Shown here: positions 24,007-49,908 of the stretch, one piece after another | Layout: every line of letters begins with the position of its first letter | Position numbering within the stretch: position 1 is the stretch's first letter | DNA from: Hyalangium minutum | GTDB taxonomy: Bacteria > Myxococcota > Myxococcia > Myxococcales > Myxococcaceae | Direction of reading: 5' to 3' | Length of the DNA stretch: 64,000 nucleotides | Assembly (NCBI RefSeq): GCF_000737315.1 | Contig: NZ_JMCB01000001.1 | Span: forward strand, 310,001-374,000 | The notes under the pieces: generated by a model | The model's database searches: none | Seen by the model: only the letters and a program-made list of their open reading frames with translations | Told to the model about the DNA's origin: nothing | Made by a program: the position numbers and the translations under genes

Positions 24007-24028
24007 GCCGCGTACCTCCCGCCTGTTG

Positions 24029-24943: not shown

Positions 24944-25448
24944 TGGGGAGCCACCTCACGGGTAGGCCCCCACAGTAGCAGATGCGAGCGAACGCTCGCG
25001 GGCCGGGATTCGGAAGCACCGGCCACCCAGCGTCACCTACCGTACGCCCATCGATGCGGCTCACGCCGTCTTCACGCCGGCACGCCGGACCTGGATGGTC
25101 GTCGGCTCCTCGTCCATGCTCAAGGACTCCCAGGGCGCCAGAGGCTTTGACTCAGTGGAAGGCGGCGTCTCTGCCTCACCGCTCGGCTCCGTGAGTGGGG
25201 GAATCGTCTTCCCCATCGACGGATGCGCGCGGGATTTCATCGCGGGGGCCAGCAGCAACAGCGCCAAGGCAAGCTCAAGCGCAGCACCACTTCGTGACGG
25301 CCCGGACGGAACGCACCAAGAGCTCTCGGCAGGACTGAGCGGGTTGTGATGCCGCCTGCGCGCAGCATCGGCGTACTCCCTCTGGCTACTCAACGGCGGG
25401 GGGGCCGTCTGGATAATGCCTGTAACCACGCTGCAAGAGGAAACAGAC

Positions 25449-27056
25449 ATGAACACGATCAAGAAGGGGAGCCCGGCGCACCCAGCGAAGCTGCCGAGCC
25501 CTAGCAAGCCAACACCTGCCAAGCCGCATCAGGCGCCCAAGGGCGCGCCGCCCCCTGCTCCACCGGCCAAGGCCCGGACTCCTGTCCAGGGTGACAGATT
25601 CGAGGCCCCAGGGCCTCAAGTGCGCGCCGACAAGAAAGGGAAGACGATCGTGGATCTCGGCTCTGGCAACAACCACGCGACCGTTCGCCAGCAGAAGGAC
25701 GGCGGGTTGACGATCACCTCGGACGGCAAGACGGTGAAGCTCACCGCGCAGCAAGCTCAGAACATGGTCATCAATGGAGGCGCTGGCAACGACACCATCG
25801 TCGCGGACAAGAGCGTCAAGAAGGGGCTGCGCATCAATGGCGGCAGCGGCAATGACACGATTGTCGGTGGCAAGGGCAACGACCGGCTTTCGGGGGGCAA
25901 GGGCCATGACGTCCTGAAAGGCGGTCTGGGCAAAGACACGCTCTCCGGCGGCAGCGGCAAAGACAGGCTCTCCGGCGGCAGCGGCAATGACAAGCTCGTG
26001 GGCGGACAGGGCAAAGACACGCTCTCCGGCGGCAGCGGCCGTGACGTCCTGAACGGTGGCCAAGGCAACGATCGGCTCTCCGGCGGCAGTGGCAACGACA
26101 CGCTCATCGGAGGGAAGGGCCACGATCGGCTCTCTGGCGACAGCGGACATGACGTCCTGAGAGGCGACCGGGGCAACGACAGGCTCTCCGGCGGCAGTGG
26201 CAACGACACGCTCATCGGGGGCCAGGGTAACAGTCTGCTCTCCGGCGGCAGCGGCAACGACACACTCATCGGGGGGCAGGGCACCAATCGGCTCTTCGGC
26301 GACAGCGGCGACGACGTGCTCATCGGCGGCCAAGGCAACAACACGCTCTCTGGTGGCGACGGCAACGACGTGCTCCTTGGGGGCCAGGGTAACAATCTGC
26401 TCTCCGGCGGCAGTGGCAACGACACGCTCATCGGGGGGCAGGGCACCAATCGGCTCTTCGGCGACAGCGGCGACGACGTGCTCATCGGCGGTCAGGGCAA
26501 CAACACGCTCTCTGGTGGCGACGGCAACGACGTGCTCCTTGGAGGCCAGGGTAACAATCTGCTCTCCGGCGACAGCGGCGACGACGTGCTCCTCGGCGGC
26601 CAAGGCCACGACACACTCTCCGGCGGCGATGGCAACGACGTGCTCCTCGGCGGCCAAGGCGACGACACGCTCTCTGGCGGCAGTGGCGACGACGTGCTCC
26701 TCGGCGGCCGGGGCAACGACACGCTCTCCGGCGGCGATGGCAACGACGTGCTCCTCGGCGGCCGGGGCAACGACACGCTCTCCGGCGACAGCGGACATGA
26801 CGTACTCGTGGGTGGCCGAGGCAACGACACACTCTCCGGCGGCGATGGCAACGACGTGCTCCTGGGCGGTCGAGGCAACGACCGGCTCTCCGGCGGCAGC
26901 GGACATGACGTCCTCGCAGGCGGCCGAGGCAACGACGCACTCTCTGGCGGCGATGGCAACGACGTGCTCCTGGGCGGCCGAGGCAACGACACGCTCTCCG
27001 GCGGCAACGGCCATGACGTGCTTGTGGGTGGCCGAGGCAACGCCCGGCGCGCATAG
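25449..27056 (+). CDS. RTX/hemolysin-type Ca-binding repeat protein
   Basis: By my count 45 full GGxGxD-type nonapeptides, 44 of them contiguous, after a Pro/Lys-rich N-terminus. ATG 25449 with RBS AGAGGA. Confidence 0.92.
26217..26540 (+). repeat. 162-bp higher-order tandem duplication within the RTX array
   Basis: 26217-26378 and 26379-26540 encode near-identical 54-aa units (six nonapeptides each), including the distinctive GGQGTNRLF repeat. Confidence 0.9.
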
Positions 27057-28283: not shown

Positions 28284-29666
28284 ATGACACAACAGTCCGC
28301 CACCGCCAGCCTCCCGTTGCGGCCCAATCAGCGCCTGGGGCACATCCCCGGCGTGTCGGGTGTGCCCTTCCTGGGGGACACCCTCGAGTTCTTGAAGGAC
28401 CCCGTCCACTACAAGCTGCGCATGCATGAGCGCTTCGGGCCCGTGTTCCGGACCAGCATCCTCGGCGACCGCAGCCTCATCCTCGTCGGCCCCGAGCTGG
28501 CCGAGGAGGTCCTCCTGGACAAGGAGCGCAACTTCTCCAGCCAGTACGGCTGGCACCGGCTGATCGGCGACACCTTCAAGAACGGATTGATGCTGCGGGA
28601 CTTCGACGACCACCACACCCACCGCCGCATCATGAACGCCGCTTTCAAACCAGAGCCCATGCGCGCCTACGTCGAGGCGCTCAACCGTCATATCGAGCAG
28701 GGCATCGCCAGCTGGCACCGCCAGCCGGACTTCCGGTTCTACCCAGCCGTCAAGGCGCTCACCCTCACCTCGTCCGCGAAGACCTTCCTGGGGTTGGACC
28801 TGGCCTCGGAGATGGACACCCTCAACAAGGCCTTCATGGCGATGCTCGACGGCGCGACGGCGCTGCTGCGCTACCCGGTGCCGGGCACCCGGACGTGGTA
28901 CGCCCAGCGGGGCCGCCGCACGCTGGAGGACTTCTTCCGCTCGCTCATCCCCCAGCGCCGCCAGGGCAACGGGACCGACCTGTTCTCGCAGTGCTGCCGC
29001 GCCACCAGCGAAGAGGGCGAGGTCTTCAGCGATACCGACCTCGTCGACCACATGATCTTCCTCTTGATGGCGTCGCACGACACCACCACCAGCGTCCTCT
29101 CCAACGTGGCCTTCGGTCTCGCCAATCACCCGGAGTGGCAGGAGCGGATCCGCGCCCAGGTGATGGCCCTGGGCAATGAGCTCTCCTACGACGAGCTGGG
29201 GAGCCTGTCCGATGCGGATCTGGTGATGAAGGAGGTGCTGCGGCTGTATCCCCCGGTGATCGGGCTCCCGCGCCGTGTCATCCGGGAGTGCACGCTCGTG
29301 GGCCTCCAGATCCCCGCCAACACCAACATCTGGGTCAGCGTCGACGCGAACCACCGGCTCCCGAAATGGTGGAAGGATCCCGAGACCTTCGATCCAGGGC
29401 GCTTCTCGACTGAGCGTGCGGAGCATCAGCAGCACCGGTTCCTGTGGATGCCCTTCGGGGGCGGTGCCCACCGGTGCATCGGCATGAAGTTCGCCGAGCT
29501 CAACGTGAAGGCGTACCTCTTCCAGCTGCTGCGCCGGTACCGGCTGAAGCTGAGGGATGGCTACGTGCCGCTGGTGGACAAGTTCCCGTTCCCGAAGCCA
29601 GCCGAAGGGCTCCCGATGAAGCTCGAGCTCCTGGAGGGTGAGCCCCGCAGGGCCGCTTCCGCCTAG
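28284..29666 (+). CDS. Cytochrome P450
   Basis: I-helix ASHDTTT, K-helix EVLR, FDPGRF, heme motif FGGGAHRCIG. Confidence 0.96.
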   Translation: MTQQSATASLPLRPNQRLGHIPGVSGVPFLGDTLEFLKDPVHYKLRMHERFGPVFRTSILGDRSLILVGPELAEEVLLDKERNFSSQYGWHRLIGDTFKNGLMLRDFDDHHTHRRIMNAAFKPEPMRAYVEALNRHIEQGIASWHRQPDFRFYPAVKALTLTSSAKTFLGLDLASEMDTLNKAFMAMLDGATALLRYPVPGTRTWYAQRGRRTLEDFFRSLIPQRRQGNGTDLFSQCCRATSEEGEVFSDTDLVDHMIFLLMASHDTTTSVLSNVAFGLANHPEWQERIRAQVMALGNELSYDELGSLSDADLVMKEVLRLYPPVIGLPRRVIRECTLVGLQIPANTNIWVSVDANHRLPKWWKDPETFDPGRFSTERAEHQQHRFLWMPFGGGAHRCIGMKFAELNVKAYLFQLLRRYRLKLRDGYVPLVDKFPFPKPAEGLPMKLELLEGEPRRAASA

Positions 29667-29697: not shown

Positions 29698-32600
29698 CTA
29701 CAGAAGCCCGAGCCGCTTCAGCTCCTGGGTGACCTGATCCTCGCTCATCCCCTCGACCTCGGCGGTGATCTTCTGCTGGCGCTCATCCACGAGCTCCTTG
29801 ATGCGCGCCGCCAGCACCGCCACCGTCGATCCCTGAAAGAACTCGGGGAGCCGCATGTCGATGTTGTAGTGCTGGTTGATGCGGTACAGGACACGGGTCG
29901 CCAAGAGGCTCTGGCCGCCCAGCTCGAAGAACTCCGCCTGCCGGTGGGTGGCCGGCACTTCCAGCACCTCACTGAACCATGCCGCGACGCGAATCTCGTC
30001 GCCGGTGCTCAGCGCCTCCTGAGGCCCCGTGGGAGCGGTGCCTGCGGAGCTCCTCTGCGCCAGCGCGGTTCGATCCACTTTGCCGTTCAAGGTCATGGGC
30101 ATCCGCTCCAGGTGCTCGATGTGCGGGATCATGTAGGAAGGCAGGTGCTTGCGCAGGTGGGCGAGGACCGTGCCCGTGGGAACCGGCTCGCCACTGGAGA
30201 CGAGGAAGGCCACGAGGCGGCTGCGCTCGGCTTCACCCTGCACGGCCACCACGGCCTCGGCGATGCCAGGCACCTCGGCCAGCCTTGCTTCCACCTCGCC
30301 GGGCTCGATGCGGTGTCCGCGCACCTTGACCTGATGGTCCTGGCGCCCGAGGAACAGCAGCTCACCGTCGTGCCGTTGCCGGACCCGATCTCCCGTTCGA
30401 TAGCACCGCTCCTGAGTGACTCCGAGCTCATCGATGCCCAGCGTCGGGAAGCGCTGCGCCGTGAGATCCTCGCGGCCGATGTAGCCTTGCGCGACGCCAT
30501 CCCCCGCGATGTAGAGCTCTCCCTCCACGCCGAGCGGAACGGGGCGCTGGTCCTCGTCCAGCACGTACAGCCGTGTGTTCTCGATGGGCTGGCCGAGCGT
30601 CACGCGCTGCTGGCCGTTGCCGAAGTACCTTCTGCTGGACCAGATGGTGGTCTCGGTAGGCCCGTACAGGTTCCACAGCGCCGCGGACTTTGGCATGAGC
30701 ACCCGGGCGAGCTCGTCGCTGAGCGCCTCGCCGCCACACAGCACCTTCAGCCCGGGGCTGCCTGTCCATCCATACTGGAGCAGCATGCGCCAGGTGGAGG
30801 GGGTGCCTTGCATCACCGTGATGCCGTCCGCCTCGAGGTAGCTCAGGAGTGCTTGTGCATCGCTCTGCTCCTCACGGGTGGCCACCCGTACCGTGGCGCC
30901 CACGGTCAGGGGCAGCAACAGCTCCAGGAGCGAGATGTCGAAGCTCAGCGAGGTGACGGCGAGCAGCCTGTCACTATGCTGCATCCCTGGGGCGCGGGCC
31001 ATGGCCCGCAGCAGGTTGACCAGGTTGTGGTGGCGCACGGCCACCCCCTTCGGCTGACCGGTAGACCCCGAGGTGAACATCACATACGCCACGTCCTCGC
31101 CGCGGTTGGGGTGGGGAGGGAAAGGCTCGGTCTGGGGGATGCCATCGTAGACGACGCGCACCGCCCCGCCAGGCACCTCCACCTCACCGGTGTCCGTCAC
31201 CACGTGGCGGGTGCCGGAGGCCTCGATCATGTAGCCGAGCCGGTTGCTGGGGAAGGCCGGGTCCAGCGGGACGAAGCCCGCGCCCGCCAGGAGGCTCCCG
31301 AGGATCGCCTCCACCATGCCCACGCTGCGCTCCATCTTGATGCCCACGAGGGAGCCCGGCCGGACACCTGCCTCGCAAAGACGGGCCGCGAAGCTCCCGG
31401 CATTCCGCAGGAGCTCGCCGTAGGTCCGGGAGTGGGGTCCGGACACCACCGCGATCTTGTCCGGCGAGCGCTGCGCCTGCCGCGCGATCAGCGCGTCCGC
31501 GCCGCCGGCCTCGTCCCACTGCTGGGCGGTGGCGTTCCACTCATTGCGGATACGTTGGACGGTGGAGGGGGCCAGCCGGGGGGCGTCCCGGAGAGGAAGG
31601 CTGGGGTGTGCAATGAGCCAGGGCACGAGCTGCAGCCACCGCTCCGAGAAGAGGCGGACGGTCTCCTCCTCGAAGAGGCGGGTGTTGTAGACGAAGAAGC
31701 TGGTGATCGCGCCCTGGCCGTCGCCGCCGGAGTAGTAATACTCCAGGTCGAACTGGCACTTCTTCGCATCGAGGTAGCGCTGCCGCAACGGCAGGCCGCG
31801 CTCCTCCACGTCAGCGGCGGGGATCTGTCCGAACAGGACCTGGAACACCGGGTTCCGGCTGGTGTCGCGCTCCAGCGCCAGGGACTCCACGATGCGATCG
31901 AAGGACAGGGAGGCATGTCCGAGCGCCTCGCGCAGCGTCCGGCCCACTTGGCTGATGAGCTGGACGAAGCTCATTCCCGGATCCGTCTCGAGCCGCAGCA
32001 CGAGGGTCGTCATCAAGCATCCGACGATGTCCTGCGCTTCCCGCGTCTCACGAGCGGCATAAGGGATGCCAGCCATGAGGTCCCGCTGCCGCGAGTGCTG
32101 ATGCAGGAACACCCCGAAGGCCGCGAGCAGGACCGTGAACACGGAGGTGCTGTTTTCCCGGGCGAAGCGCCTCAGGCCCTCCGATATCGCCTCGTCGAGG
32201 TCCGCGCGGACCTGGCCCCCGTCGTAGGTGAGGTGGCGTGGCCGCTCCTGATCGTAGGGCAGCGAGAGGACCGGCGGGTTGGCCAGCCGCTGGCGCCAGT
32301 AGCGCAGCTCCTCGGCCAGCGTCTCGGGGTTCCTCAGACGCTCCGCGCGGAGGAAGGACACGATGGACGGTGCGGTTCCAGGCAGCTCCTCCCCGGCGTA
32401 GAGCAGCCCGAGGTCGCGCATCATCTGCCGGATCGACCACCCGTCTCCGATCAGGTGATGGAGTGACAGGCCGAGTTGCTGGCTGCCGTCGGGCGCGCGG
32501 AACAGGAAGACCTTGAACAAGGGAGCCTTGTCCATGCGGAACGGCCGGACCAGGTGCGTGCGAACCATGTCCTCGCGTGCACGCGGCTCGTGCGGCAGGA

Positions 32601-33015
32601 GGACCGTCTCGACCGGGATGTTGATCCGCGCCTCGAACATCTGGATGGGGATGCCCTCCAGACTGGGGAAGCTGGCGCGCAGCGCCAGATGCCGGGAAGC
32701 CAGCGCCTCGAAGGCTTGCTGCAGCCGGTGCGGATCAGTGCCGGCGGGTACGTCGAAGAGAAAGGGAATGGTGTAAGCCGTGGACTCGGGGGCGTACTGC
32801 GAGATGAACCAGATGCGCTTCTGCACGCCGCTGAGCCACGCGGCGTGCCGATCGCCCAGCAGCTCGAGGATCCGCGCCTTGTTCGTGGAGAGGAAGGACC
32901 GCTCGCCGTCCGAGAGCTTCCCCGACACCTTCTTGAAGCCGAGACGGCCACCGTCTACCCACAGCTCGACGCCAGAGTTGATCAACTGACCGAGCGAACC
33001 CTCGAACTCAGACAT
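29698..33015 (-). CDS. Single-module NRPS: TubC_N-type docking - C - A(Gly) - PCP - C-terminal docking helix, no TE
   Basis: N-terminal GVELWVDGGRLGF..., HHLIGDG, YVMFTSGSTGQPKG, NLYGPTETT, YRTGD, QVKVRGHRIE, NGKVDR, PCP FFELGGQSL. Specificity residues read by eye as DILQLGLIWK (Gly code). Confidence 0.95.
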   Translation of the reverse strand: MSEFEGSLGQLINSGVELWVDGGRLGFKKVSGKLSDGERSFLSTNKARILELLGDRHAAWLSGVQKRIWFISQYAPESTAYTIPFLFDVPAGTDPHRLQQAFEALASRHLALRASFPSLEGIPIQMFEARINIPVETVLLPHEPRAREDMVRTHLVRPFRMDKAPLFKVFLFRAPDGSQQLGLSLHHLIGDGWSIRQMMRDLGLLYAGEELPGTAPSIVSFLRAERLRNPETLAEELRYWRQRLANPPVLSLPYDQERPRHLTYDGGQVRADLDEAISEGLRRFARENSTSVFTVLLAAFGVFLHQHSRQRDLMAGIPYAARETREAQDIVGCLMTTLVLRLETDPGMSFVQLISQVGRTLREALGHASLSFDRIVESLALERDTSRNPVFQVLFGQIPAADVEERGLPLRQRYLDAKKCQFDLEYYYSGGDGQGAITSFFVYNTRLFEEETVRLFSERWLQLVPWLIAHPSLPLRDAPRLAPSTVQRIRNEWNATAQQWDEAGGADALIARQAQRSPDKIAVVSGPHSRTYGELLRNAGSFAARLCEAGVRPGSLVGIKMERSVGMVEAILGSLLAGAGFVPLDPAFPSNRLGYMIEASGTRHVVTDTGEVEVPGGAVRVVYDGIPQTEPFPPHPNRGEDVAYVMFTSGSTGQPKGVAVRHHNLVNLLRAMARAPGMQHSDRLLAVTSLSFDISLLELLLPLTVGATVRVATREEQSDAQALLSYLEADGITVMQGTPSTWRMLLQYGWTGSPGLKVLCGGEALSDELARVLMPKSAALWNLYGPTETTIWSSRRYFGNGQQRVTLGQPIENTRLYVLDEDQRPVPLGVEGELYIAGDGVAQGYIGREDLTAQRFPTLGIDELGVTQERCYRTGDRVRQRHDGELLFLGRQDHQVKVRGHRIEPGEVEARLAEVPGIAEAVVAVQGEAERSRLVAFLVSSGEPVPTGTVLAHLRKHLPSYMIPHIEHLERMPMTLNGKVDRTALAQRSSAGTAPTGPQEALSTGDEIRVAAWFSEVLEVPATHRQAEFFELGGQSLLATRVLYRINQHYNIDMRLPEFFQGSTVAVLAARIKELVDERQQKITAEVEGMSEDQVTQELKRLGLL

Positions 33016-36000
33016 ACCCGTCCTCCCCCTCGTCAGCAGCGGCTGTCTCTGCGGGCACTCCGAGGGAGATGAGCTCCGTCAGCCGCCCGGCAGCCTGCTG
33101 GATCGTCAGCTCCTCCAGGGGAACGTCCATGGGGATCTTCACGCTGAAGCGAACCTCCAGCGCGTTTCGCAGATCGAGCGCCACGAGTGAGTCGACACCC
33201 AGCTCGTACAAAGTGTGCTGTGGCGAGATGCGCTCCCGGTCGATCCGCAGTGTCGCCGCCAGGGCCGCGCTCAGCGCCTCTTCCACCTCCGGGGTCTCCC
33301 GGGTCTCCGCGGTTCCGCCGGGGGCAGGTGCACGCACGGGGGTTGCCGTGGCTGTGGCGGTGGGCTTCGGGCTCGTCTTGGAAGCCGTACACACGCTGGT
33401 GATGACCTGCTGCCCGAGCCGGTCGGCTCCTTCTCCCGCGACCGAGCGCGCCGACTGGAACCTGCGCTGGCCGAGCATCTGGCGCCAGGAGTCGAAGGAG
33501 AGCCCCGGTGAACCCGGGATGCGGACCTCCGGATCACGGAAGCGCCACCAGCCGTCGAGGAGGCCGAAGGTCAACGTGGTGAAGGGCGACGCCGAGCAGA
33601 TCTCGTTCAGCACCAGCACGCCGCCCGCCGTCATCAGCGTTGCCACGTGCTCGAGGGTCCGGCGGATGTCCGTGGTGGCGTGAAGCACGTTGGAGGCAAT
33701 GACCACGTCGTAGTGGCTGATCGGGACCTCACGCTGGGCGGCCGGATCGCGCTCGATGTCCAGCAAGGCCCAGGACAGATAGGATGCGCGTTCGGCGAAG
33801 CGCTCGGCGAAGTTCCGGAACCCGAGGGACACGTCCGTGTAGGTATAGGAGATGCGGCCCGCGTGCGGCGCGAGGCGATCGATGATGCCCGCGGTCGTTC
33901 CGCCCGTGCCCGCTCCGATCTCGAGCAGGTGGACGGTCCCGCCGTCCGGGAGCTGAGCGAGCCTGGCAAGCACGGCTTTCTCGACAGCCTCCGCAGTGCG
34001 TGCGTTGAAGAAGTCCGCGATGGGGTTGCCGCGATAGACGTTCTCGACGAGGCTCATCGCGCCATCGGGGAACAGGACATGCGTGGCGGGGAGCTCGCCC
34101 CGCAGGACCGGGCTCAGGTGGCTGAGGCACCGTTGCAGCAGGTCGAGCGCTGCATTGGCCGGACCTGGCTGCGCAGCTGCGGGCTGCCCCACCAGCCGGA
34201 TGGCGCCGCCCGTCTCCTCGACGTGACCTGCGGCGCGCAGAATGTCCAGCACCGCCGTGAGGAGGCGCTCATACTTCGGCTGCACGCCGAGCCGTGTGGC
34301 CAGCTCGCCCGAGGAGATGGGCTCTCTGAGGCCGAGCTCCGACAATGCCAGGAAGGTCCGCTGGACGATCAGCTGACGTTGGATCCGCTCCTGCTCAGCG
34401 TACAGGGCTGTGAGGGCGGCGGTCTCGGTGGGGCGCTCAGCCAAGGTCTCGACGGGGTTCTTCCACGAGCGCGGCTGCTCGAACGCCCAGTAGCGGTGGT
34501 CCTCGAAGGGGTAGGACGGAAGGCCCATCCTCAGCGGGCGCCCATAGGGATACAGCAGAGCCCAGTCAACCTCGGTGCCCTGGACCCAACGCCGGCACCA
34601 CACCTCGGGAGCGTCCTCGAGGCGTGGAGGGGACTCTGGAGAGGCCGGTGGCGCACCCGCGTTTCCGTGCACGGCGAGCGGCCCCGGTTTGCCGGCCAAC
34701 CAGCCCGAGAGCACGTCAATGACATCCGCGATGCTCTGGACGGGGCTGGCGAGACGTGCGGGGAGCGGCTCACGGCCCACCTGCAGGGTGTAGATCAGCG
34801 ACAGAAGGCCGCCCTCATCGTGGGGAGAGAGGCCGATCGGGCGTGGTGCGCGGCCCTCGAGCAGGGACAGGAGGTCGCGGCACCGCGCGCGGAGGGTCAC
34901 ATCGTTTGCCGCCGACAGCACGAGACAGTGCGCACGGTGGCCAGTGCCAGGCGTGGCCTGCGGGCCGCTGGCCTCGGCAGGAGGATCTCCCAACACCACG
35001 TGGGCGTTCACGCCTCCGAACCCGAAAGAACTCACGCCGGCCACTCGGTCTCCAGCGGGCCACTGCACGGGCTTGCCGATCAAGAAGAGCGGCGAGCCAT
35101 CGAGCCGCAGGCGCGAGTTCGGCTTCTCGAACCCCTGCAGCCCCACCCTCTTGCCATGGCCCAGGCAGAGCAGGACCTTCACCACGCCTGCGATACCCGC
35201 CGCGGCCTCCAGGTGGCCGAGGTGCGTCTTGACCGCTCCAAGGCCTACGGAGCCAGGCGCGAGCTCTACACCGTGCTCACGCGCCAGAGCGGAGAGCGCC
35301 CTTTTCAGGCCCGCGATCTCGATCGGGTCCCCAAGCGGCGTACCTGTGCCGTGGGTCTCCACATAGGACACCCGGTCTGGTGGGATGCCGGCGTCCCGGA
35401 AGGCCTCTGCGATGACGGAAGACTGCGAATAGGGATTGGGAGAAGTCACCGTGGGGGCGGCCCCTCCGTGGTTCATCGCGGATCCGTACACGGTCCCGTA
35501 GATGCGATCCCCGTCTGCTCGCGCCTGCGCCAGCGGCTTGAGCAGGAGCATCGCAGCGCCCTCACCGCGCACGTATCCGTCGGCGCCTTCATCGAAGGTC
35601 CGGCACCGCCCCCGAGGCGACAGCATGCCGGCCCGCGAGAAGCAGATCCCCGGCGCGGGGATGAGGTTGAGGTTGACCCCGCCCACGAGCGCCTGCTCGC
35701 ACTCACCCAGGCGGATGTCCCGCACCGCTCTGTGGAGCGCCACCAGGGAGCTGGAGCACGCGGTGTCGATGGCGAGGCTCGGCCCCTTGAAGTTGAAGAA
35801 GTAGGAGATGCGGCTGGTGACGAACGAGGCGGCGGCGCCCAGCGCCGTGTAGCCCTCGGCCGGGCTGCTGGAGGCCTCCAGCAGCGGCCTCCAGTCCTGG
35901 CTGGAGGCACCGACGTAGACACCCACCGCCTTCCCGCGCAGGCTGGACGGTGTGTGGGCGGCATCCTCCAGGCACGCCCAGGCCAGCTCCAGCATGATCC

Positions 36001-36280
36001 GGTGGTGCGGATCCATCCAGCCGGCTTCGCGGCCGGTGATGTGGAAGAAGGGCGCGTCGAACCGGTCCACGTCGTCCAGATACGAGCCGGGCTGCGAACC
36101 GTTCTCGGACTCGATGCTGCGGACAGTGCTCCAGTACCAGCGCTCCGCGGGCGTGAGCCTGATGAGGTCCGTCTCGTTCAAGAGGTTGGCCCAGAACGCA
36201 TGTTGGTCCGGGGCCGACGGGAACCGGCAGGCGAGGCCCACGATGGCGATGGCGCCATCCGTGCCTCGGGGTCGCGTCAC
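33008..36280 (-). CDS. AT-less (trans-AT type) PKS module: KS - C-methyltransferase - ACP
   Basis: KS triad DTACSSS / HGTGT / HLGH, GVSSFGFGG, flanking subdomain joined directly to the LPSYPF..RYW linker with no GHSxG AT, SAM motif LLEIGAGTGG, ACP LGVDSL. Confidence 0.93.
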   Translation of the reverse strand: MTRPRGTDGAIAIVGLACRFPSAPDQHAFWANLLNETDLIRLTPAERWYWSTVRSIESENGSQPGSYLDDVDRFDAPFFHITGREAGWMDPHHRIMLELAWACLEDAAHTPSSLRGKAVGVYVGASSQDWRPLLEASSSPAEGYTALGAAASFVTSRISYFFNFKGPSLAIDTACSSSLVALHRAVRDIRLGECEQALVGGVNLNLIPAPGICFSRAGMLSPRGRCRTFDEGADGYVRGEGAAMLLLKPLAQARADGDRIYGTVYGSAMNHGGAAPTVTSPNPYSQSSVIAEAFRDAGIPPDRVSYVETHGTGTPLGDPIEIAGLKRALSALAREHGVELAPGSVGLGAVKTHLGHLEAAAGIAGVVKVLLCLGHGKRVGLQGFEKPNSRLRLDGSPLFLIGKPVQWPAGDRVAGVSSFGFGGVNAHVVLGDPPAEASGPQATPGTGHRAHCLVLSAANDVTLRARCRDLLSLLEGRAPRPIGLSPHDEGGLLSLIYTLQVGREPLPARLASPVQSIADVIDVLSGWLAGKPGPLAVHGNAGAPPASPESPPRLEDAPEVWCRRWVQGTEVDWALLYPYGRPLRMGLPSYPFEDHRYWAFEQPRSWKNPVETLAERPTETAALTALYAEQERIQRQLIVQRTFLALSELGLREPISSGELATRLGVQPKYERLLTAVLDILRAAGHVEETGGAIRLVGQPAAAQPGPANAALDLLQRCLSHLSPVLRGELPATHVLFPDGAMSLVENVYRGNPIADFFNARTAEAVEKAVLARLAQLPDGGTVHLLEIGAGTGGTTAGIIDRLAPHAGRISYTYTDVSLGFRNFAERFAERASYLSWALLDIERDPAAQREVPISHYDVVIASNVLHATTDIRRTLEHVATLMTAGGVLVLNEICSASPFTTLTFGLLDGWWRFRDPEVRIPGSPGLSFDSWRQMLGQRRFQSARSVAGEGADRLGQQVITSVCTASKTSPKPTATATATPVRAPAPGGTAETRETPEVEEALSAALAATLRIDRERISPQHTLYELGVDSLVALDLRNALEVRFSVKIPMDVPLEELTIQQAAGRLTELISLGVPAETAAADEGEDGYV

Positions 36281-37227
36281 TTGGCCACCGCGCGCGTGGT
36301 GATCTCGCGGATGAGCTCACCAATCATGCCCATCTCGGGCTGCTTGCCGGTGACGAAGACCTTGCCGGGCACATCCACGAAGTGCACCTTCCGCTGGTTC
36401 GTCTGAACGGTGCACAGGTGCGTGGCGTACGGCGAGTCCTGCTGGATCTCCTTGTGGTACTGCGCCTCCTCACCCGCGGCGATGACCTCAATGACGCCGC
36501 GGTACAGGGCCGGCTTGTACGCCAGCATGGCCTCCAGGCCCGCGTTGTACACGTTGACGCGGTGGCGGAAGAGAAGCTCCTCCTGATCCGTCTTGAGGTA
36601 GCCGTGCTTGCGCAGGAGATCCAGGAAGACGTCGATCTGGATCGAGTCGTCCTTGCTCAGGACCTCCTCGATCGGGAAGCCCTCCATGGAGTTACCGAGA
36701 AACTCGTCGAACACGAACATGAAGTCCTGGACGACGCGCTTGCGGGGGGACTCCAGGTGGGCCAGCTCCGTCCACTGGCGAGGGAAGAGCGGGAGGAAGT
36801 CGAGGCAGAGGGCAACCTGCTTGCCGCGGTCCTGCAGCTGCTTACAGATCTCGTAACAGACGAGGCCTCCGTTGCAGAAGCCGCCAATGTAGTAGGGGCC
36901 CTCTGGCTGGATCTCGAGGATCCGCTTCACGTCGAAGGCGGCGATCTCCTCGATGGTCCGGTAGGGCTGCTGCTCGCCCTCCAGGCCTGGAGTCTGGCAC
37001 CCGTACATGGACCAGTCCTCTGGGAGGTACGGCAGGTAGTTGCGGAGGTAGTTCACAGTGCCATCAGTGGCAGGGCAGAAGAACAGGATGGGCGCTCCTG
37101 GTGCTCCCTGGCGCAGCAGCACCATGGTGTCTGTCTTCTTCGGGTTCGGCTTGAACTTGAGGTAGTGCTCCAGGAGCATCGCCTTCTTCTGCTCAGTGGA
37201 CAGGCTCTGGTTCTGCTCTGCGGTCAT
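36277..37227 (-). CDS. Stand-alone thioesterase-fold protein with Cys at the nucleophile position and an N-terminal docking-like helix
   Basis: PILFFCP, YGCQTPGLEGE..PYRTIEEIAA, GPYYIGGFCNGG (GxCxG). ATG 37227 with RBS GGAGG; GTGA overlap with the PKS start. Confidence 0.82.
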   Translation of the reverse strand: MTAEQNQSLSTEQKKAMLLEHYLKFKPNPKKTDTMVLLRQGAPGAPILFFCPATDGTVNYLRNYLPYLPEDWSMYGCQTPGLEGEQQPYRTIEEIAAFDVKRILEIQPEGPYYIGGFCNGGLVCYEICKQLQDRGKQVALCLDFLPLFPRQWTELAHLESPRKRVVQDFMFVFDEFLGNSMEGFPIEEVLSKDDSIQIDVFLDLLRKHGYLKTDQEELLFRHRVNVYNAGLEAMLAYKPALYRGVIEVIAAGEEAQYHKEIQQDSPYATHLCTVQTNQRKVHFVDVPGKVFVTGKQPEMGMIGELIREITTRAVAK

Positions 37228-37504
37228 GCTTCCTCCGTTGGCCACTCTGCTGACGGCGCAAACGTCGGCCATCATACTATGGCGATGCGGATCACGCTGA
37301 TCGGCGCGGTGTGCCACGCCTGCTTTCAGAGAACCTGTGACGGCGGGTCGTTACCGACCATGCATGCGTGGCCAAGAGGCACGAGCGGGCGGATCCGTCC
37401 GCGAAGGCTTGTGCCTGATCACGACAACGGGTGAGAGACCTTCCAGGTCTGACGGCGTGCTGGAGCACGCCCTCCAAGCCGGGAGAGCGGCTACAGTCCG
37501 CGCC

Positions 37505-41677: not shown

Positions 41678-41914
41678 TTTTATCCTTGACTCAGACCCGC
41701 AAAACATTCAAATACCGTAAATCACCATAGGGCTAGATTCCGGGGACATCTACCCAGCCATCCTGGTGCGCTGCGTCGCAGAGGGGACTGGATGGGGTGA
41801 ACGTCGGCCTGCCTCAGGTTGCACATCATTGATGCTCGCAGCCCGACGCCTGTTGCGAACGCCTCTTCAGGCGTGATGACACACTTTACCCATTGTCTCA
41901 TCCAGGCAGGATTT

Positions 41915-44900
41915 ATGCTCTATCTCAAACACTCCAGACGCATCCTCCATGCCGCATGTGCAAGTCTATTCCTCACGAGCGCGTGCAGCCCAGCAGGGGG
42001 TTCTCCTGACGGGCAAGACATTGCGCCGCCGGGAGGGAGGCTCTCCACGCAAAGCGCGTCATTGGCCTCGACCCTCCTCTCCGCGGGCAAGCCTGCCTCC
42101 GCCAGCAGCAACAACTCTCCTTACACCGCGAGCAACCTCACCGACGGCAACCAGAACTCCTATTGGGAGTCGACCAATGGGGCTTTCCCCCAGTGGGCGC
42201 AGATCGACCTGGGCTCGGCCGCGACCGTCGAGGACCTCGTCTTGCGGCTCCCGGCGGGCTGGGGTTCTCGTAACCAAACCCTCTCCGTCCAGTCCTCCAC
42301 CGACGGCTCCTCATTCACCACCCTCGTGGCGAGCGCGTCCTATGCGTTCAATCCGTCCACGAGCAACACCGTGACGATCGACGTCCCGGACACGTCCGCG
42401 CGCTACGTGCGCGTCACCATCACCGCCAACACGGGCTGGAGCGCCGGCCAGCTCTCCGAGCTCGAGGTCCGCGGCACCACCACCACCACCCCGCCGACCG
42501 ACCCGCCTCCGCCCACCGGCAGCAACCTCGCCCTCGGCAAGCCCATCACGGGCTCCTCGACGGAGTATTTGTTCGTAGCCACCAACGCCAACGACAACAG
42601 CACGGACACGTACTGGGAGGGCGCGGGAGGCCAGTACCCGAGCCACCTGACCGTCTCGCTCGGCACGAGCGTGGACCTCTCGGGCGTCGTCCTCAAGCTT
42701 CCGCCGGCCTCCGCCTGGGCGACTCGCACCCAGACCTTCGAGATCCAGGGCCGCAGCCAAGCCAGCGGCTCCTTCACCACGCTCAAGGCCTCCGCGGCGT
42801 ACACGTTCAACCCCGCGACGGGGAACACGGTCACCGTGCCCGTCACCGGCACCGCCGCCGACGTCCGCGTCGTCTTCACGGGCAACACCGGCTCCGGGAA
42901 CGGCCAGGCCGCCGAGTTCCAGATCTACGGCAGCCCCACGGCAAACCCCGACCTCACGGTCACTGCGGTCACCGCCACTCCCAGCTCGCCGATCGAGTCC
43001 GACTCGATCACGCTGACGGCCACGGTGAAGAACATCGGCACCCGGACGTCGGCGGCGACGACTGCCGCCCTCACCGTTGACGGCACACGGCTCGCCACAG
43101 CCAGCGTTGCCAGCCTCGCGGCGGGTGCGACCACGACCGTGTCGGCGTCGATCGGCAAGAAGACCGCCGGGTCCTACACCATCGGTGCCATCGCGGATCC
43201 CGACGGCACGGTCGTCGAGCAGAACGAGAGCAACAACGCGTTCAGCAACCCGACCAAGCTCACGGTGTCGGAGGCTCCCGGGCCCGACTTGCAGGTGCTG
43301 AGCATCAGCTCGAACCCCGCGAACCCGGCCGTCGGGGCACCGGTGACGTTCAGCGCGGAGGTGAAGAACCGCGGGACCACGGCGACCGGGGTGGCCACGG
43401 TCACCCGTATCGTGGTGGGCACCAGCACGCTCAACGCCAGCACCCCGGCCATCGCCGCCGGCGCGACCGTCTCCGTGACGACCAGCGGCAGCTGGACCGC
43501 CACGAGCGGGGGAGCCACGGTCACTGCCACCGCCGATGCAACCAGCGTCGTCGCCGAGACGCGCGAGGACAACAACACCTTCTCGCAGTCGATCGTGGTC
43601 GGGCGCGGGGCGGCGGTCCCCTGGGTCTCCTACGAGGCCGAGGCCGGCCGCTACCAAGGCACCCTGCTGGAGACGGACGCCCTGCGGACGTTCGGGCATA
43701 CCAACTTCGCCACCGAGTCCTCGGGCCGCAAGTCCGTGCGCCTGAACAGCACCGGCCAGTACGTCGAGTTCACCTCGACCAACTCCACGAACTCGATCGT
43801 CGTGCGCAACTCCATCCCCGACGCACCGGGCGGGGGCGGCCAGAGCGCCACGATCAGCCTGTACGCCAATGGCACCTTCGTGCAGAAGCTCACGCTCTCT
43901 TCGAAGCACAGCTGGCTGTACGGGAACACCGACGGCCCGGAGGCACTGACCAACTCGCCCCAGGCCGACGCGCGGAGGCTGTTCGACGAGTCGCAGGCGC
44001 TGCTCGCGCAGACCTACCCGGCCGGGACCGTCTTCCGCCTGCAGCGAGACGCGACGGACACGGCCACGTACTACATCATCGACGTGATCGATCTCGAGCA
44101 GGTGGCCCCGCCGCTGAGCAAGCCCTCCGAGTGCACCTCGATCACGAACTACGGCGCGGTGCCGAACGACGGCATTGAAGACACGGATGCCCTCCAGCGG
44201 GCGGTGACGGACAACCAGAACGGCGTCATCAGCTGCGTGTGGATCCCCGCGGGGCAGTGGCGGCAGGAGAAGAAGATCCTCACCGACGACCCGCTGAACC
44301 GCGGGATGTACAACCAGGTGGGCATCCGGAACGTGACGATCCGCGGCGCGGGCATGTGGCACTCCCAGCTCTACGCCACGATCGAGCCGCAGAACCAACC
44401 GACCAGCATCAACCACCCCCACGAGGGGAACTTCGGCTTCGACATCGACGACAACGTGAAGATCTCCGACATCGCGATCTTCGGCTCCGGCCGCATCCGG
44501 GGCGGCGACGGCAACGCCGAGGGAGGCGTCGCCCTGAATGGCCGGTTCGGCAGGAACACGCGGATCACCAACGTGTGGATCGAGCACGCCAACGTGGCGG
44601 TCTGGGTGGGCCGTGACTACGACAACATCCCCGATCTGTGGGGCCCGGCGGACGGGCTGCAGTTCAGTGGCATGCGCATCCGCAACACCTATGCGGACGG
44701 CATCAACTTCAGCAACGGCACGCGGAACTCGCAGGTGTTCAACTCGTCGTTCCGCACCACCGGTGACGACTCCCTGGCGGTCTGGGCCAACCCCTACGTC
44801 AAGAATCCCTCGGTGGACATCGCCCACGACAACCACTTCGTCAACAACACGGTCCAGCTGCCCTGGCGGGCGAACGGCATCGCGATCTACGGCGGCTACG

Positions 44901-45352
44901 GCAACACGATCGAGAGCAACCTCATCTACGACACGATGAACTACCCGGGCATCATGCTGGCGACCGACCACAGCCCCCTGCCCTTCTCGGGGACGACGCT
45001 GATCGCCAACAACGGGCTGTACCGGACCGGTGGCGCGTTCTGGAACGAGGACCAGGAGTTCGGGGCGATCACGCTGTTCCCGTCGACGTCGGACATCTCC
45101 GGCGTCACCATCCGGGACACGGACATCTACGACTCGACCTACGACGGCATCCAGTTCAAGAACGGCGGCGGCAACATGCCGAACGTCGTGATCAGCAACG
45201 TGCGGATCAGCAACTCGCTCAACGGTGCCGGCATCCTGGCCATGAGCGGCGCTCGCGGCAGCACGACCCTGACGAACACCACCATCACCGGCTCGGCCGA
45301 CGGCAACATCGTCAAAGAGCCGGGGTCACAGTTCGTCATCAACGGCCCGTAG
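41915..45352 (+). CDS. Multidomain GH87-like alpha-1,3-glucanase/mycodextranase lipoprotein: 2x discoidin (F5/8C), 2x CARDB, CBM-like module, beta-helix catalytic domain
   Basis: LTSAC lipobox, TDGNQNSYWES..FPQW.QIDLG and NDNSTDTYWE discoidins, E.NESNN and ETREDNN CARDB ends, YEAE module, GAGMWHS, IRNTYADGINF, FRTTGDDSLAVW, PWRANGIAIYGG. Confidence 0.8.
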   Translation: MLYLKHSRRILHAACASLFLTSACSPAGGSPDGQDIAPPGGRLSTQSASLASTLLSAGKPASASSNNSPYTASNLTDGNQNSYWESTNGAFPQWAQIDLGSAATVEDLVLRLPAGWGSRNQTLSVQSSTDGSSFTTLVASASYAFNPSTSNTVTIDVPDTSARYVRVTITANTGWSAGQLSELEVRGTTTTTPPTDPPPPTGSNLALGKPITGSSTEYLFVATNANDNSTDTYWEGAGGQYPSHLTVSLGTSVDLSGVVLKLPPASAWATRTQTFEIQGRSQASGSFTTLKASAAYTFNPATGNTVTVPVTGTAADVRVVFTGNTGSGNGQAAEFQIYGSPTANPDLTVTAVTATPSSPIESDSITLTATVKNIGTRTSAATTAALTVDGTRLATASVASLAAGATTTVSASIGKKTAGSYTIGAIADPDGTVVEQNESNNAFSNPTKLTVSEAPGPDLQVLSISSNPANPAVGAPVTFSAEVKNRGTTATGVATVTRIVVGTSTLNASTPAIAAGATVSVTTSGSWTATSGGATVTATADATSVVAETREDNNTFSQSIVVGRGAAVPWVSYEAEAGRYQGTLLETDALRTFGHTNFATESSGRKSVRLNSTGQYVEFTSTNSTNSIVVRNSIPDAPGGGGQSATISLYANGTFVQKLTLSSKHSWLYGNTDGPEALTNSPQADARRLFDESQALLAQTYPAGTVFRLQRDATDTATYYIIDVIDLEQVAPPLSKPSECTSITNYGAVPNDGIEDTDALQRAVTDNQNGVISCVWIPAGQWRQEKKILTDDPLNRGMYNQVGIRNVTIRGAGMWHSQLYATIEPQNQPTSINHPHEGNFGFDIDDNVKISDIAIFGSGRIRGGDGNAEGGVALNGRFGRNTRITNVWIEHANVAVWVGRDYDNIPDLWGPADGLQFSGMRIRNTYADGINFSNGTRNSQVFNSSFRTTGDDSLAVWANPYVKNPSVDIAHDNHFVNNTVQLPWRANGIAIYGGYGNTIESNLIYDTMNYPGIMLATDHSPLPFSGTTLIANNGLYRTGGAFWNEDQEFGAITLFPSTSDISGVTIRDTDIYDSTYDGIQFKNGGGNMPNVVISNVRISNSLNGAGILAMSGARGSTTLTNTTITGSADGNIVKEPGSQFVINGP

Positions 45353-47187: not shown

Positions 47188-49908
47188 TCAGAAGCTTCCT
47201 TTCATGCCAACGATGGGGAGCAGCGGGAGGCCCGGCAGCGCGTACTGCTCGCGGTAGCGGTAGTCGTCGAGGACGAACTCGACGTTCTCCCGGTTGTAGA
47301 GGTTCTGCACATCCAGGTACGCAGTGAGCGTCCAGCTCTGGAACTGCCAGCTCTTGTCCACGCGCACATCGAGCTGGTGGAAGCTGTCCGCGCGCGCGGA
47401 GAAGTACGGGCCCCGCGTGGGCTCGAAGGTGTTGCCGTCCGAGAGGTAGATGTCGTAGCCGTGCGAGATCGGCGTCACCGGCCGGCCACTGGTGAAGCGG
47501 AAGCGCCCGCCCAGCTCCCAGCCGTCGCCCAGCACATAGCCGGCCACCACGGTGAGGATGTGCGTCTGGTCCCACTGGCTCAGGCCGTAGGCGTTCTCGG
47601 TGGTGGACTCGCCGAAGCCGCCGCCATTGACGGCGGGCAGTGGCCCTGCGCGCCCATCCTCGGCGCGGCTGAAGGTGTACGACAGCCAGCCGTGCACCTT
47701 GTCAGAGGAGGAGGCGCGCTCCTTCTTCACCATCAGCTCCACGCCCAGGGCCTTGCCGACGCCGTCGTTGCTGTAGCGCTCCTGGATGACGCCGCCCCCG
47801 TCGAGGGAGAGGAGCTGCCCTGGCGCCACCACGTTCTTGAAGCGGCGGTTGAAGAAGCCCGTCACATCCACGCTCAGCGCGTCCGTGAGGCGGTGCTCCG
47901 CTCCGAGGCTGGTCTGGAAGGCGCGCTGGTAGAGGAGCTTCGGGTTTCCGTAGGGCAGCGTGATGAACTGGTACGTCTCCGGGGCCTGGCTGTAGAGACC
48001 CGCCGAGCCCTTGAGGGTGGTCCGCTCACTGGCCGAGTACCGGAGCCACAGCCGCGGATCCAGGGCCAGGTTTCTCGCGCCTCTCGAACGCTGGAGGTTG
48101 CCGCGCACGCCCGGGGTGAGGGTGAAGGCGCCCAGCTTGTAGTCCGCCTCCACGAACAGCCCGCCGTCGAAGCCGTTGATGCTGAGCTCCTCGCGCAGCA
48201 GCTCCGCCTCGGGCTCGGCCCCGGGGAAGGGCACGTACTCGGTGCCCCCGGGCGCGGGGACCTGCACCTCCACGAGAAAGTGCTCGAAGTACACATCCAG
48301 GCCCGTGCGCAGGGTGAGCGAGGAGGACAGCTCCATCGACAGCGTCTGGCGCGCGCCCAGGGAGTAGAGGGTGGTGTCCTGCTGGAAGCTGCCGAACTCC
48401 AGGCTGCCCTTGTCCAAGCCCACGTAGGGCGTGAAGACGGAGGTGAGGTTGCCCTTCCGGTACGTCCAGTCGCCCTTGACGCGGTGGAAATGGGAGTGCG
48501 TGCCAAGCTTCAGGTCCCGATCTTGCTCCTCGCCGGAGGACACGAGGGTGAGCTGATCGTCCGCGCCGAAGGCCATGATGTGGCCGGTGCTGCGCGCGGC
48601 TCCGGCCACGGGGGCCTCCTTGGAGCGTTCGCCGAAGTCCACACGGAACTGGTAGTCCCAGTAGCGCGGCACTACCGACAGCGTGCTCCCCTCCTCCTTG
48701 GGGAGCACGAGGGGCAACAGCGCGTCGAGGTAGGAGCGCCGGGCCGAGGCGGCCACGCTGATCCCGTCCGTGAGGGGGGCCTCAATGAAGAAGCCCGCAT
48801 CCATCGCATCCACCTTCACCGAGCCGTGCAGCGTGTCGCTGGCGCCCTTGCGCGTGGCCACGTCCACCACGCCGCCCACCGCGCGGCCATACTGGCTGCC
48901 ATAGCCGCCCGGGTAGAAATCGAGCGAGTCGATGAACTCGGCGTTGACCACCGAGGGGCCGGCCCCCAGGTGAAACAAGAGGGGGATGCGCACTCCGTCC
49001 ATCAGTGTCGCGCTCTGACCCGGGTTGGAGCCGCGCACCAGCAGCTCGCCCGAGATGAAGGGAGCGCGCGCCACGCCCGGCAGCGCCTGGATGACGCGGA
49101 TGGGATCGCCAAAGGTGCCCGGCGTCTTCTGCGCCTCCTCGCGAGACACCGTGCGGCGCACCACCTCCTTCTTGGGCCGCTCCGAGCGCACCACCGTCTC
49201 GAAGGCGCCGCCGGTGGGCACCAGGTAGAAGACGATCTCCGTCGTCTCGTTGGGCTTCAGCTGCTCCGTCGTCTGGTAGCGCTGGAAGTTCGAGGCCACC
49301 ACGCGCACCGCGCACTCGCCCGGCTCGACCTGAAGGGTGAAGTGGCCCTCCTCGTCCGAGAGCGCCTCGGGCGCCTCGGGGTCATCTCCGCAGCGCACGG
49401 TGGCCCCCGGCACACGCGAGCGGCTGCCTCGGGAGATGAGCGTTCCGGTGAGCGTCGCCAGAGGCTTCTGCACCTGCTCGGGCGCGGCGTCTGGGGCGGC
49501 CTCGGCGGTCGCGGAGAGGGTGAAGTGGTAGACGTACTCTACCTGCACCGGGGCCGGGACTCCGTCCACCTCCGCGGGAGAGAACTGGAAGGCGCGCACC
49601 GCCTCGAGCGCGGCCTCGTCGAAGCCGTGGCCCACCGGCTCGGCGAGCTGCGCGTCGGAGACGGTACCGTCTTCGGCGATGGTGATGATGAGCCGCACGT
49701 CGGCGGTGAGCCCCTGGGCGGCGGCCTCGGGCGGGTACTTCGCCTCCACGGGCTTCACCAGGACCGGAGCCTTGGTGAGCTGTGCGGCGGGCTTCGGTGT
49801 CTCCGCGGCGGAAGCCGGCGAAGGGTTCTGCTCCTGGGCGAGCGAAGACGCACCCATCAGGAGCGAGGCTGCGATGAGCGCAGCCCTCGTCTTCAGGTTC
49901 GAGGACAT
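47188..49908 (-). CDS. TonB-dependent receptor with an N-terminal TonB C-terminal domain
   Basis: KYPPEA..QG....V.L.ITI..DG.V...GFDEAALEAVRAFQFSPA (TonB-CTD), then plug PGTFGDPIRVIQALPGV...DFYPGGYGSQYG, barrel, LDVQNLYN, C-terminal GMKGSF. Confidence 0.9.
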   Translation of the reverse strand: MSSNLKTRAALIAASLLMGASSLAQEQNPSPASAAETPKPAAQLTKAPVLVKPVEAKYPPEAAAQGLTADVRLIITIAEDGTVSDAQLAEPVGHGFDEAALEAVRAFQFSPAEVDGVPAPVQVEYVYHFTLSATAEAAPDAAPEQVQKPLATLTGTLISRGSRSRVPGATVRCGDDPEAPEALSDEEGHFTLQVEPGECAVRVVASNFQRYQTTEQLKPNETTEIVFYLVPTGGAFETVVRSERPKKEVVRRTVSREEAQKTPGTFGDPIRVIQALPGVARAPFISGELLVRGSNPGQSATLMDGVRIPLLFHLGAGPSVVNAEFIDSLDFYPGGYGSQYGRAVGGVVDVATRKGASDTLHGSVKVDAMDAGFFIEAPLTDGISVAASARRSYLDALLPLVLPKEEGSTLSVVPRYWDYQFRVDFGERSKEAPVAGAARSTGHIMAFGADDQLTLVSSGEEQDRDLKLGTHSHFHRVKGDWTYRKGNLTSVFTPYVGLDKGSLEFGSFQQDTTLYSLGARQTLSMELSSSLTLRTGLDVYFEHFLVEVQVPAPGGTEYVPFPGAEPEAELLREELSINGFDGGLFVEADYKLGAFTLTPGVRGNLQRSRGARNLALDPRLWLRYSASERTTLKGSAGLYSQAPETYQFITLPYGNPKLLYQRAFQTSLGAEHRLTDALSVDVTGFFNRRFKNVVAPGQLLSLDGGGVIQERYSNDGVGKALGVELMVKKERASSSDKVHGWLSYTFSRAEDGRAGPLPAVNGGGFGESTTENAYGLSQWDQTHILTVVAGYVLGDGWELGGRFRFTSGRPVTPISHGYDIYLSDGNTFEPTRGPYFSARADSFHQLDVRVDKSWQFQSWTLTAYLDVQNLYNRENVEFVLDDYRYREQYALPGLPLLPIVGMKGSF

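Follow-up and report, generated by a model that had tools for sequence, protein, structure and literature searches.

We analyzed a 64,000-nucleotide stretch of the Hyalangium minutum genome (contig NZ_JMCB01000001.1, positions 310,001 to 374,000; the window, from whose first letter all coordinates are counted) and found on its reverse strand a gene, 36277-37227, for a free-standing thioesterase (TE)-like protein that carries a cysteine nucleophile and has no histidine at the position where TEs normally hold theirs. Judged by sequence, it belongs to a rare, uncharacterized family of His-less Cys thioesterases, which is tied to polyketide synthase-nonribosomal peptide synthetase (PKS-NRPS) cassettes terminating in glycine. 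The protein probably serves as the Cys-dependent release enzyme of such an assembly line. Our best explanation of the system as a whole, which we put forward tentatively, is that it would act in trans, form an acyl-enzyme at Cys118 and off-load its chain without water, most plausibly by a Dieckmann-type C-C cyclization.

The longest open reading frame (ORF) around the gene spans 36277..37317(-) and begins with a GTG at 37317. We rejected this longer start, since the ATG at 37227-37225 has a ribosome-binding site, a GGAGG located 4 nt upstream; the closest homologues begin at the same Met, and the 316-amino acid product is thus the likely one. Its translation matches PF00975 (Thioesterase) in the N-terminal half only (E=6.2e-19; 69.5 bits, gathering cut-off 26.4). 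An AlphaFold2 model computed with a 50-sequence alignment as input (mean predicted local distance difference test score (pLDDT) 91.1, predicted template modeling score (pTM) 0.91) has an alpha/beta sheet and, inserted between strands 138-146 and 246-251, a lid of four helices comprising ~90 residues. When we compared this model with the PDB using Foldseek, the top 50 matches were all thioesterases of PKSs, NRPSs or fatty acid synthases (FASs) at a probability of 1.00, with Skyxy-TE (7CRN), AB3403 (4ZXH), human FAS TE, the oocydin TE, Pks13 TE and NocB TE among the highest-ranking ones. We are confident that the protein adopts the PF00975/type I thioesterase fold predicted by the model. The ratio of non-synonymous to synonymous substitution rates (dN/dS) is 0.13-0.31 against the orthologues of its closest relatives, a Myxococcaceae metagenome-assembled genome (locus L001) and Corallococcus sicarius (L002), and the gene is therefore under purifying selection. 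An N-terminal amphipathic helix is likewise conserved (Leu11, Lys15, Leu19, Leu23).

In the model, Cys118 directly follows strand 112-117 and precedes helix 119-133, the place of the nucleophile elbow G-x-(Ser/Cys)-x-G, which here reads GGFCNGG. The original prediction had named this ORF as a Cys-nucleophile thioesterase, and the Cys codon lies exactly where it had been put. It had also noted that the usual VPGxH segment reads VDVPGKVF, with no His at the expected position. Indeed, Val290 (codon GTC, 36358-36360) occupies the position of the catalytic His in each of three independent alignments: HMMER sets the 'EGDH' of human FAS TE opposite 'VPGKV', BLASTP sets the 'VPGSHF' of P0128, a free-standing canonical Cys-type TE, opposite 'VPGKVF', and MAFFT aligns the 'PGDH' of the NRPS TE P0013 to the Val290 region. 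The survey of homologs that had been suggested as a check was carried out on a 50-sequence family alignment. Cys118 is invariant (50/50), as are Gly116, Gly120 and Gly121, which together define a fixed G-x-C-x-G-G frame. Column 290 contains Ala in 35 members, Thr in ten, Val in three, Ser in one and a gap in one, so that the catalytic His of PF00975 thioesterases is found in none of the 50. Two Cys-type TEs from beyond the family boundary differ in this respect: the canonical outgroup P0128 has both the Asp and VPGSHF, and P0199 reads VPGNHV in this loop, its His being one column off in hmmalign.

The third member of a putative triad is less clear. An Asp after strand beta-6 (LCLD) had been described as kept, and Asp143 is present there, three residues short of the strand end in the model, but its catalytic equivalence is plausible rather than established. 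It follows the nucleophile by 25 residues, whereas the Asp of EntF, AB3403 and P0128 does so by 27 (residue counts in the alignments). HMMER pairs Asp143 with the Asp of EntF, whereas the AB3403 and P0128 alignments do not; those to AB3403 end before its His region. In addition, column 143 is a His in 42 of the 50 family members and a Gln in the outlier P0060. For these reasons we regard Asp143 as only a candidate for the catalytic acid at position I.

The family is sharply bounded and rare. In a profile search of 5.8 billion proteins, E values below 1e-80 were obtained for ~55 clusters (90% identity), and the next matches come only at E ~1e-16. When 1.84 billion representatives (50% identity) were searched exhaustively with HMMER, only 6-7 family clusters were recovered, beyond which the matches are ordinary cis TE domains scoring at most 193 bits. 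Members occur in Myxococcota (Myxococcaceae, Corallococcus, Nannocystis, Polyangium, Hyalangium, Chondromyces) and in Actinomycetota (Streptomyces, Lentzea, Amycolatopsis, Saccharopolyspora, Nocardia, Kitasatospora), and NCBIfam holds no model specific to them. Besides the elbow, the family has invariants of its own (Thr54, Asp/Glu55, Arg150, Trp152, Arg164, Asp168, Arg223, Tyr227, Tyr267 and Asp285, the last being Asp in 44/50), which the model places in the helical lid and in loops along the C-terminal edge of the sheet. Thr54-[Asp/Glu]55 takes the place of the usual Gly-Gly of the oxyanion loop, and Arg150 and Trp152 lie within a P-x-F-x-R-x-W motif directly after beta-6.

Two versions of the active site can be distinguished. 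The main clade (42 sequences) reads AGNCMGG / LVLHLMP / VDA[DE][GA][GS]ALF, with His143 and an acidic residue at 287. The window clade, eight sequences from Myxococcaceae and Corallococcus with 70-97% identity to the window protein, reads GGFCNGG / LCLD[FLM]LP / VDVPG[KR][VT]FV. Asn119 and Asp143 are found in 8/8 window-clade sequences, Met119 and His143 in 42/42 main-clade sequences, and this perfect switch suggests that residues 119 and 143 may touch. His157, His222, His270 and His282 are invariant in the window clade, which also has a basic Lys/Arg289 specific to it; none of these is conserved in the main clade, where 32 members carry His298. No His column is thus conserved across the family as a whole. 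A relocated base, the alternative named in the original prediction, could correspond to His143 in most of the family, but the window clade has Asp143 instead, and its own invariant His residues are not shared family-wide. In a crude neighbor-joining tree P0061 (His143) is basal and the window clade branches next, an order compatible with an ancestral Asp143 as well as with a reversal.

Several further features of the family and its surroundings were recorded. The window protein has six cysteines beyond Cys118 (51, 77, 124, 128, 141 and 272). Cys51, Cys128, Cys141 and Cys272 are invariant in the window clade and replaced by Phe/Tyr, Ala, Val and Arg, respectively, in the main clade, and position 77 is Cys in 41/50 members. 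A separate TE group from Chloroflexota and related bacteria (P0014, P0015, P0057-P0059) has the exact GGFCNG elbow; within it, the canonical His is present in P0015 (AGTH) but replaced by Gln in P0014 (PGTQ), so that Cys-nucleophile TEs may have lost their His on more than one occasion. Just outside the family, the large NRPS/PKS proteins P0063, P0064, P0143, P0149 and P0162 contain two Cys-type TE domains each (GxCxG), which in P0143 and P0162 are ~2,000 residues apart and not in tandem. The 341-amino acid P0054 matches both PF00975 and the cytochrome P450 Pfam model, which points to a fusion or else to a frameshift in the record.

The gene is the first of a translationally coupled three-gene operon, in which it is followed by a PKS with the domains ketosynthase (KS), C-methyltransferase (cMT) and acyl carrier protein (ACP) and by an NRPS with the domains condensation (C), adenylation (A) and peptidyl carrier protein (PCP). 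Adjacent genes overlap at both junctions: the TGA stop of the TE-like gene and the GTG start of the PKS gene are merged in GTGA, and the PKS and NRPS genes share 8 nt. The PKS translation has intact motifs for the KS (Cys/His/His), the methyltransferase and the ACP. Pfam and NCBIfam scans of this protein found no acyltransferase (AT), ketoreductase (KR), dehydratase, enoylreductase or loading module, nor was a trans-AT present among the scanned ORFs of the window; starter acyl and malonyl units would thus have to come from primary metabolism. The NRPS ends in its PCP and a 33-amino acid tail, with no TE, reductase or terminal C domain detected by Pfam. Its A domain has the specificity code DILQLGLIWK, which we take to be a glycine code. 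A beta-ketoacyl-glycine substrate, which had been guessed earlier, fits this code and the KR-less PKS.

This arrangement is not restricted to the window. A genome scan yielded 24 loci with full-length relatives of the protein (L001-L024), of which L021 is cut at the TE and leaves no flank and L016 is cut inside the PKS. Wherever flanks are available (24/24 loci: L001-L020, L022-L024 and the window), the TE-like gene adjoins a single-KS PKS and a C-A-PCP protein, and these three are the only gene families common to all loci. The A-domain code is glycine-type, DILQ[LWF]G[LMV][IL]W, in every readable case (23 loci and the window), and the Pfam-scanned loci (window, L001, L002, L007, L019 and L023) have neither a KR in the PKS nor a TE on the NRPS. 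L001 and L002, the genomic loci closest to the operon, share the three-gene order of the window and have different flanks; both are from Myxococcaceae, in keeping with a myxobacterial origin of the window. The order in 21 main-clade loci (L003-L020, L022-L024) is PKS, then C-A-PCP, with the free-standing TE directly after. In three scanned examples the main-clade PKS is ACP-KS-AT-AT-ACP without a KR; mixed loading-plus-extension modules of this kind have been reported for other myxobacterial lines. The specificity motifs of the main-clade ATs are non-standard (YASH, VAGH, FPSH and others) and give no reading on an alpha-methyl chain. From these conserved neighbor genes it is well supported that the substrate is an N-(beta-ketoacyl)-glycyl-S-PCP and that the TE-like protein is the only candidate release function of the line. 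Outside the family we asked whether Cys-type TEs in general tend to go with glycine modules, using 29 matches of the representative search that have an A domain upstream of the TE, and rejected this idea: a Gly-type A domain precedes 1/6 Cys-type and 4/23 Ser-type TEs, with no correlation.

The actinomycete cassettes (L005, L007-L010, L012, L014-L016, L019 and L024) contain additional genes downstream, at positions ~10.8-14.2 kb of each locus, namely a conserved flavoenzyme resembling 2,4-dienoyl-CoA reductase (old yellow enzyme (OYE)/FadH-like; Oxidored_FMN and Pyr_redox_2) and a P450. The Lentzea locus L007 also has a chorismate-binding enzyme. Coordinates of the window features are collected in Table 1.

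Table 1. Thioesterase-like gene of the Hyalangium minutum window, its active-site codons and adjacent biosynthetic genes
Feature	Position	Strand	Basis
Stand-alone Cys-type thioesterase-like gene, 316 aa	36277..37227	-	ORF translation, PF00975, AlphaFold2, Foldseek, dN/dS
Shine-Dalgarno GGAGG, 4 nt 5' of ATG 37227	37232..37236	-	Sequence; homologue N-termini
Cys118 codon TGC in nucleophile elbow GGFCNGG	36874..36876	-	Invariant in 50/50 family members
Asp143 codon GAC (LCLD), strand beta-6, +25 from Cys118; candidate catalytic acid	36799..36801	-	Alignments
Loop after beta-8, D285-V-P-G-K289-V290	36358..36375	-	Alignments; Val290 at canonical His position
PKS gene: KS (~35150-36253), C-methyltransferase (~33572-33979), ACP (~33086-33277)	33008..36280	-	Pfam, NCBIfam
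NRPS gene: TubC-type docking domain (~32857-32988), C (~31582-32841), A (~30079-31485), PCP (~29800-29985)	29698..33015	-	Pfam
Cytochrome P450, convergent with the operon	28284..29666	+	Pfam

We propose the following route for the window system. The KS-cMT-ACP protein would make a 2-methyl-3-oxoacyl chain, whose beta-keto group would be kept because no KR is present, and the C-A(Gly)-PCP protein would join this chain to glycine. The resulting N-(beta-ketoacyl)-glycyl moiety may then move from the PCP to Cys118 in an energy-neutral transthioesterification, for which a His should not be strictly needed when the thiolate sits at the N terminus of helix 119-133 and faces an oxyanion hole. Thioesters react preferentially with carbon nucleophiles. 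Since there is, in addition, no His at the site that would activate water, the acyl-enzyme is most likely resolved without water, through attack by the substrate's own acidic carbon between the two carbonyls. We infer a non-hydrolytic release of this kind, in which family-invariant Asp, Arg and Tyr residues would supply the base and stabilize or anchor the enolate. A Dieckmann-type cyclization would yield a 3-acyl-(3-methyl)pyrrolidine-2,4-dione (a tetramate); alternatively, a related C-C closure could proceed via the glycine alpha-carbon. We favor such C-C cyclizations because the Dieckmann cyclases TrdC, NcmC and BpdE share the assembly-line logic, yet a specifically Dieckmann-type release should be read as a suggestion, less secure than the release function itself. 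Unusual off-loading by cyclization or acyl transfer, as had been anticipated from the elbow and the loop, still appears to be the best reading of a Cys thioesterase without the usual His.

Several points weigh against this proposal. The cMT in the PKS should leave the alpha-carbon methylated, so that Dieckmann closure would give rise to an unusual quaternary C3; a gem-dimethylated chain could not undergo it at all. Characterized Dieckmann cyclases require their His, and BpdE H245N is inactive (PMC10956176). No similarity to NcmC (6E6Y) was detected: the family profile matched 55 PDB sequences at E<=10, none of them NcmC, and the 50 best Foldseek hits did not include it either. Finally, the clade-invariant His157, His222, His270 and His282 could provide a relocated base for ordinary hydrolysis, and a role in loading or transfer is possible for a protein whose gene is the first of the operon, ahead of a PKS without AT or loading module.

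Ordinary hydrolysis would use a substitute base to activate water and release free N-(2-methyl-3-oxoacyl)glycine; His270 (after beta-7), His157 (in the lid), Lys/Arg289 and Asp143, Asp55 or Asp285 are candidates for that base. It is the default reaction of thioesterases, and an alpha-methylated substrate would disfavor Dieckmann closure. The four His residues of the window clade and its position 289 are invariant or conservatively kept in all eight members, and the main clade has His143, joined by His298 in 32 sequences. No candidate is conserved across the family, however, unlike Cys118 and many other residues, and position 143 swaps between His, Asp and Gln. Moreover, hydrolysis gains no advantage from a Cys nucleophile, and all characterized Cys-type TEs release their products non-hydrolytically (PMC6668435, PMC11298585, PMC10956176). 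We thus consider simple hydrolysis unlikely.

An acyl shuttle, in which Cys118 passes the acyl group to a thiol, amine or hydroxyl in the manner of Pks13 TE, or else primes the KS or ACP with a starter, appears more improbable still. The TE-like gene does come first in the window-clade operon, whose PKS no longer has the loading ACP and the two ATs present in the main clade; the acyltransferase Pks13 TE is one of the structural neighbors, and thioester exchange needs no His. But the main-clade gene directly follows the C-A-PCP gene in 21 loci, which points to a shared downstream, release-side role, the scanned PKSs there have loading domains of their own, and no conserved gene would supply an acceptor.

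We give even less weight to a terminal-amide route, as reportedly used by myxothiazol MtaG and melithiazol MelG, in which the glycine would be sacrificial: an oxidase would hydroxylate its alpha-carbon, the primary amide would leave, and the TE would clear glyoxylyl-S-PCP. The glycine code in every readable locus would fit, as would the P450 beside the window operon and the one after the TE in actinomycete loci. These two P450s are not orthologous, however, and belong to unrelated families, and the window gene is convergent with the operon rather than part of it. Neither a P450 nor another oxidase is conserved in Corallococcus sicarius L002 or in the myxobacterial main-clade loci examined, so that we rejected the window P450 as a fixed member of the pathway and regard its part in the pathway of the window as doubtful. 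A pseudo-enzyme that lost catalysis together with its His, as in His-less alpha/beta-hydrolase-fold receptors, and that now serves the NRPS as a docking or chaperone partner, perhaps through the conserved N-terminal helix, is hardly credible given the G-x-C-x-G-G elbow that is invariant across two phyla, the dN/dS values and an assembly line with no other release function.

Other genes of the window encode a 546-amino acid protein made up nearly entirely of RTX calcium-binding nonapeptide repeats (25416-27056 (+); 20 HemolysinCabind stretches, E=6e-157); a Ser/Thr protein kinase (22228-24006) adjoining a DUF2381 protein (24029-24943), together spanning 22228-24943 (-); an alpha-1,3-glucanase of the secreted type (41819-45352 (+); 1177 amino acids) that contains F5/8 type C and CARDB domains, two of each; and a 713-amino acid protein with a caspase domain (Peptidase_C14; 51949-54090 (-)). 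A 906-amino acid protein resembling outer-membrane receptors (47188-49908 (-)) is an unusual fusion in which a TonB_C domain at the N terminus is followed by CarboxypepD_reg, Plug and barrel segments; MotA/ExbB is encoded nearby (51181-51927).

To our knowledge, the classical His is still in use in every characterized Cys-type release enzyme, be it ObiF, SulM or a TrdC/NcmC cyclase. A family that retains the Cys without this His would demonstrate that acyl-enzyme chemistry is possible on a thioesterase fold that relies on another base or on no base at all, and its two active-site versions would constitute a natural experiment on the residues that replace His. It would also point to an unexplored class of small molecules made by a minimal three-gene cassette in myxobacteria and actinomycetes, for which the motifs GCQTPGL[ED]G, G-x-C-[NM]-G-G and P-x-F-x-R-x-W offer a handle in genome mining. 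Literature searches returned nothing relevant on the three-gene cassette or on His-less Cys thioesterases.

We compared the protein with other thioesterases from PKS and NRPS systems. Type II editing thioesterases (RifR, RedJ, YbtT) are likewise free-standing PF00975 proteins in such clusters, where they proofread hydrolytically with a Ser-His-Asp triad. They are much weaker matches (profile E 5e-8 to 0.09), and we rejected this identity, as the window protein has Cys rather than Ser, lacks the His and has no other release domain to back up.

ObiF and SulM, which form a beta-lactone and a beta-lactam, respectively, share the GxCxG nucleophile and a non-hydrolytic release from acyl-S-Cys, and SulM also has an Asn after the Cys (Gln-Cys-Asn; Phe-Cys-Asn in the window protein). 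The original prediction had drawn on these enzymes and their strained rings, an analogy that fails here: both are fused domains with a full triad, including the His and an Asp after beta-7 (position II), and act on beta-OH or beta-NH substrates (PMC6668435, PMC11298585), whereas the window protein is free-standing, lacks the canonical His and would receive glycine. Neither the ObiF1 nor the SulM structure was matched by the family profile in the PDB search at E<=10. Beta-lactone or beta-lactam chemistry is excluded, because glycine has no beta-OH or beta-NH nucleophile.

The best match among solved structures is the TE of Acinetobacter baumannii AB3403, a C-A-PCP-TE protein (4ZXH/4ZXI; E=2e-13 with the single sequence, 1e-21 with the family profile), which is fourth in the Foldseek ranking and shares the type I fold with a helical lid. 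It too has a nucleophilic Cys, in GGWCFGG, and its Asp follows beta-6 (position I; PMC11298585); the AB3403 A domain has been crystallized with glycine as a representative substrate (PMC10510592); no product of AB3403 is known (PMC11298585, PMC10510592). In contrast to the window protein, which is free-standing, has Val at the His site and its Asp at +25 rather than +27, the AB3403 TE is joined in cis to its PCP.

In operon logic the window corresponds to TrdC, NcmC and BpdE, the type of cyclase that off-loads tetramates and pyridones. These, too, are free-standing alpha/beta-hydrolases of the TE-like kind that have a Cys nucleophile (BpdE C89S is inactive) and a helical subdomain, and they act on the chain of a terminal C-A-T (T, thiolation) module without a TE (PMC10956176). 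The window likewise combines a free-standing enzyme with a terminal, TE-less C-A-PCP and a PKS expected to keep the beta-keto group, and this linkage recurs in 24 loci. TrdC/NcmC-type enzymes are ~267 amino acids long and depend on a Cys-Asp-His triad (PMC10956176), compared with 316 amino acids and no His in the window protein. As no homology to NcmC was detected, the window family would be a separate lineage, and any shared chemistry convergent. We speculate that it may represent a previously unrecognized His-less, Cys-dependent off-loading lineage, derived from type I thioesterases independently of TrdC/NcmC, that acts on beta-ketoacyl-glycyl-S-PCP and uses a non-His base for C-C release of a tetramate or related pyrrolinone; its active site would then have been rebuilt at least twice, as Met119/His143/acidic 287 and as Asn119/Asp143/Lys289. 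By analogy, the window protein would work most like the TrdC/NcmC cyclases without being one of them.

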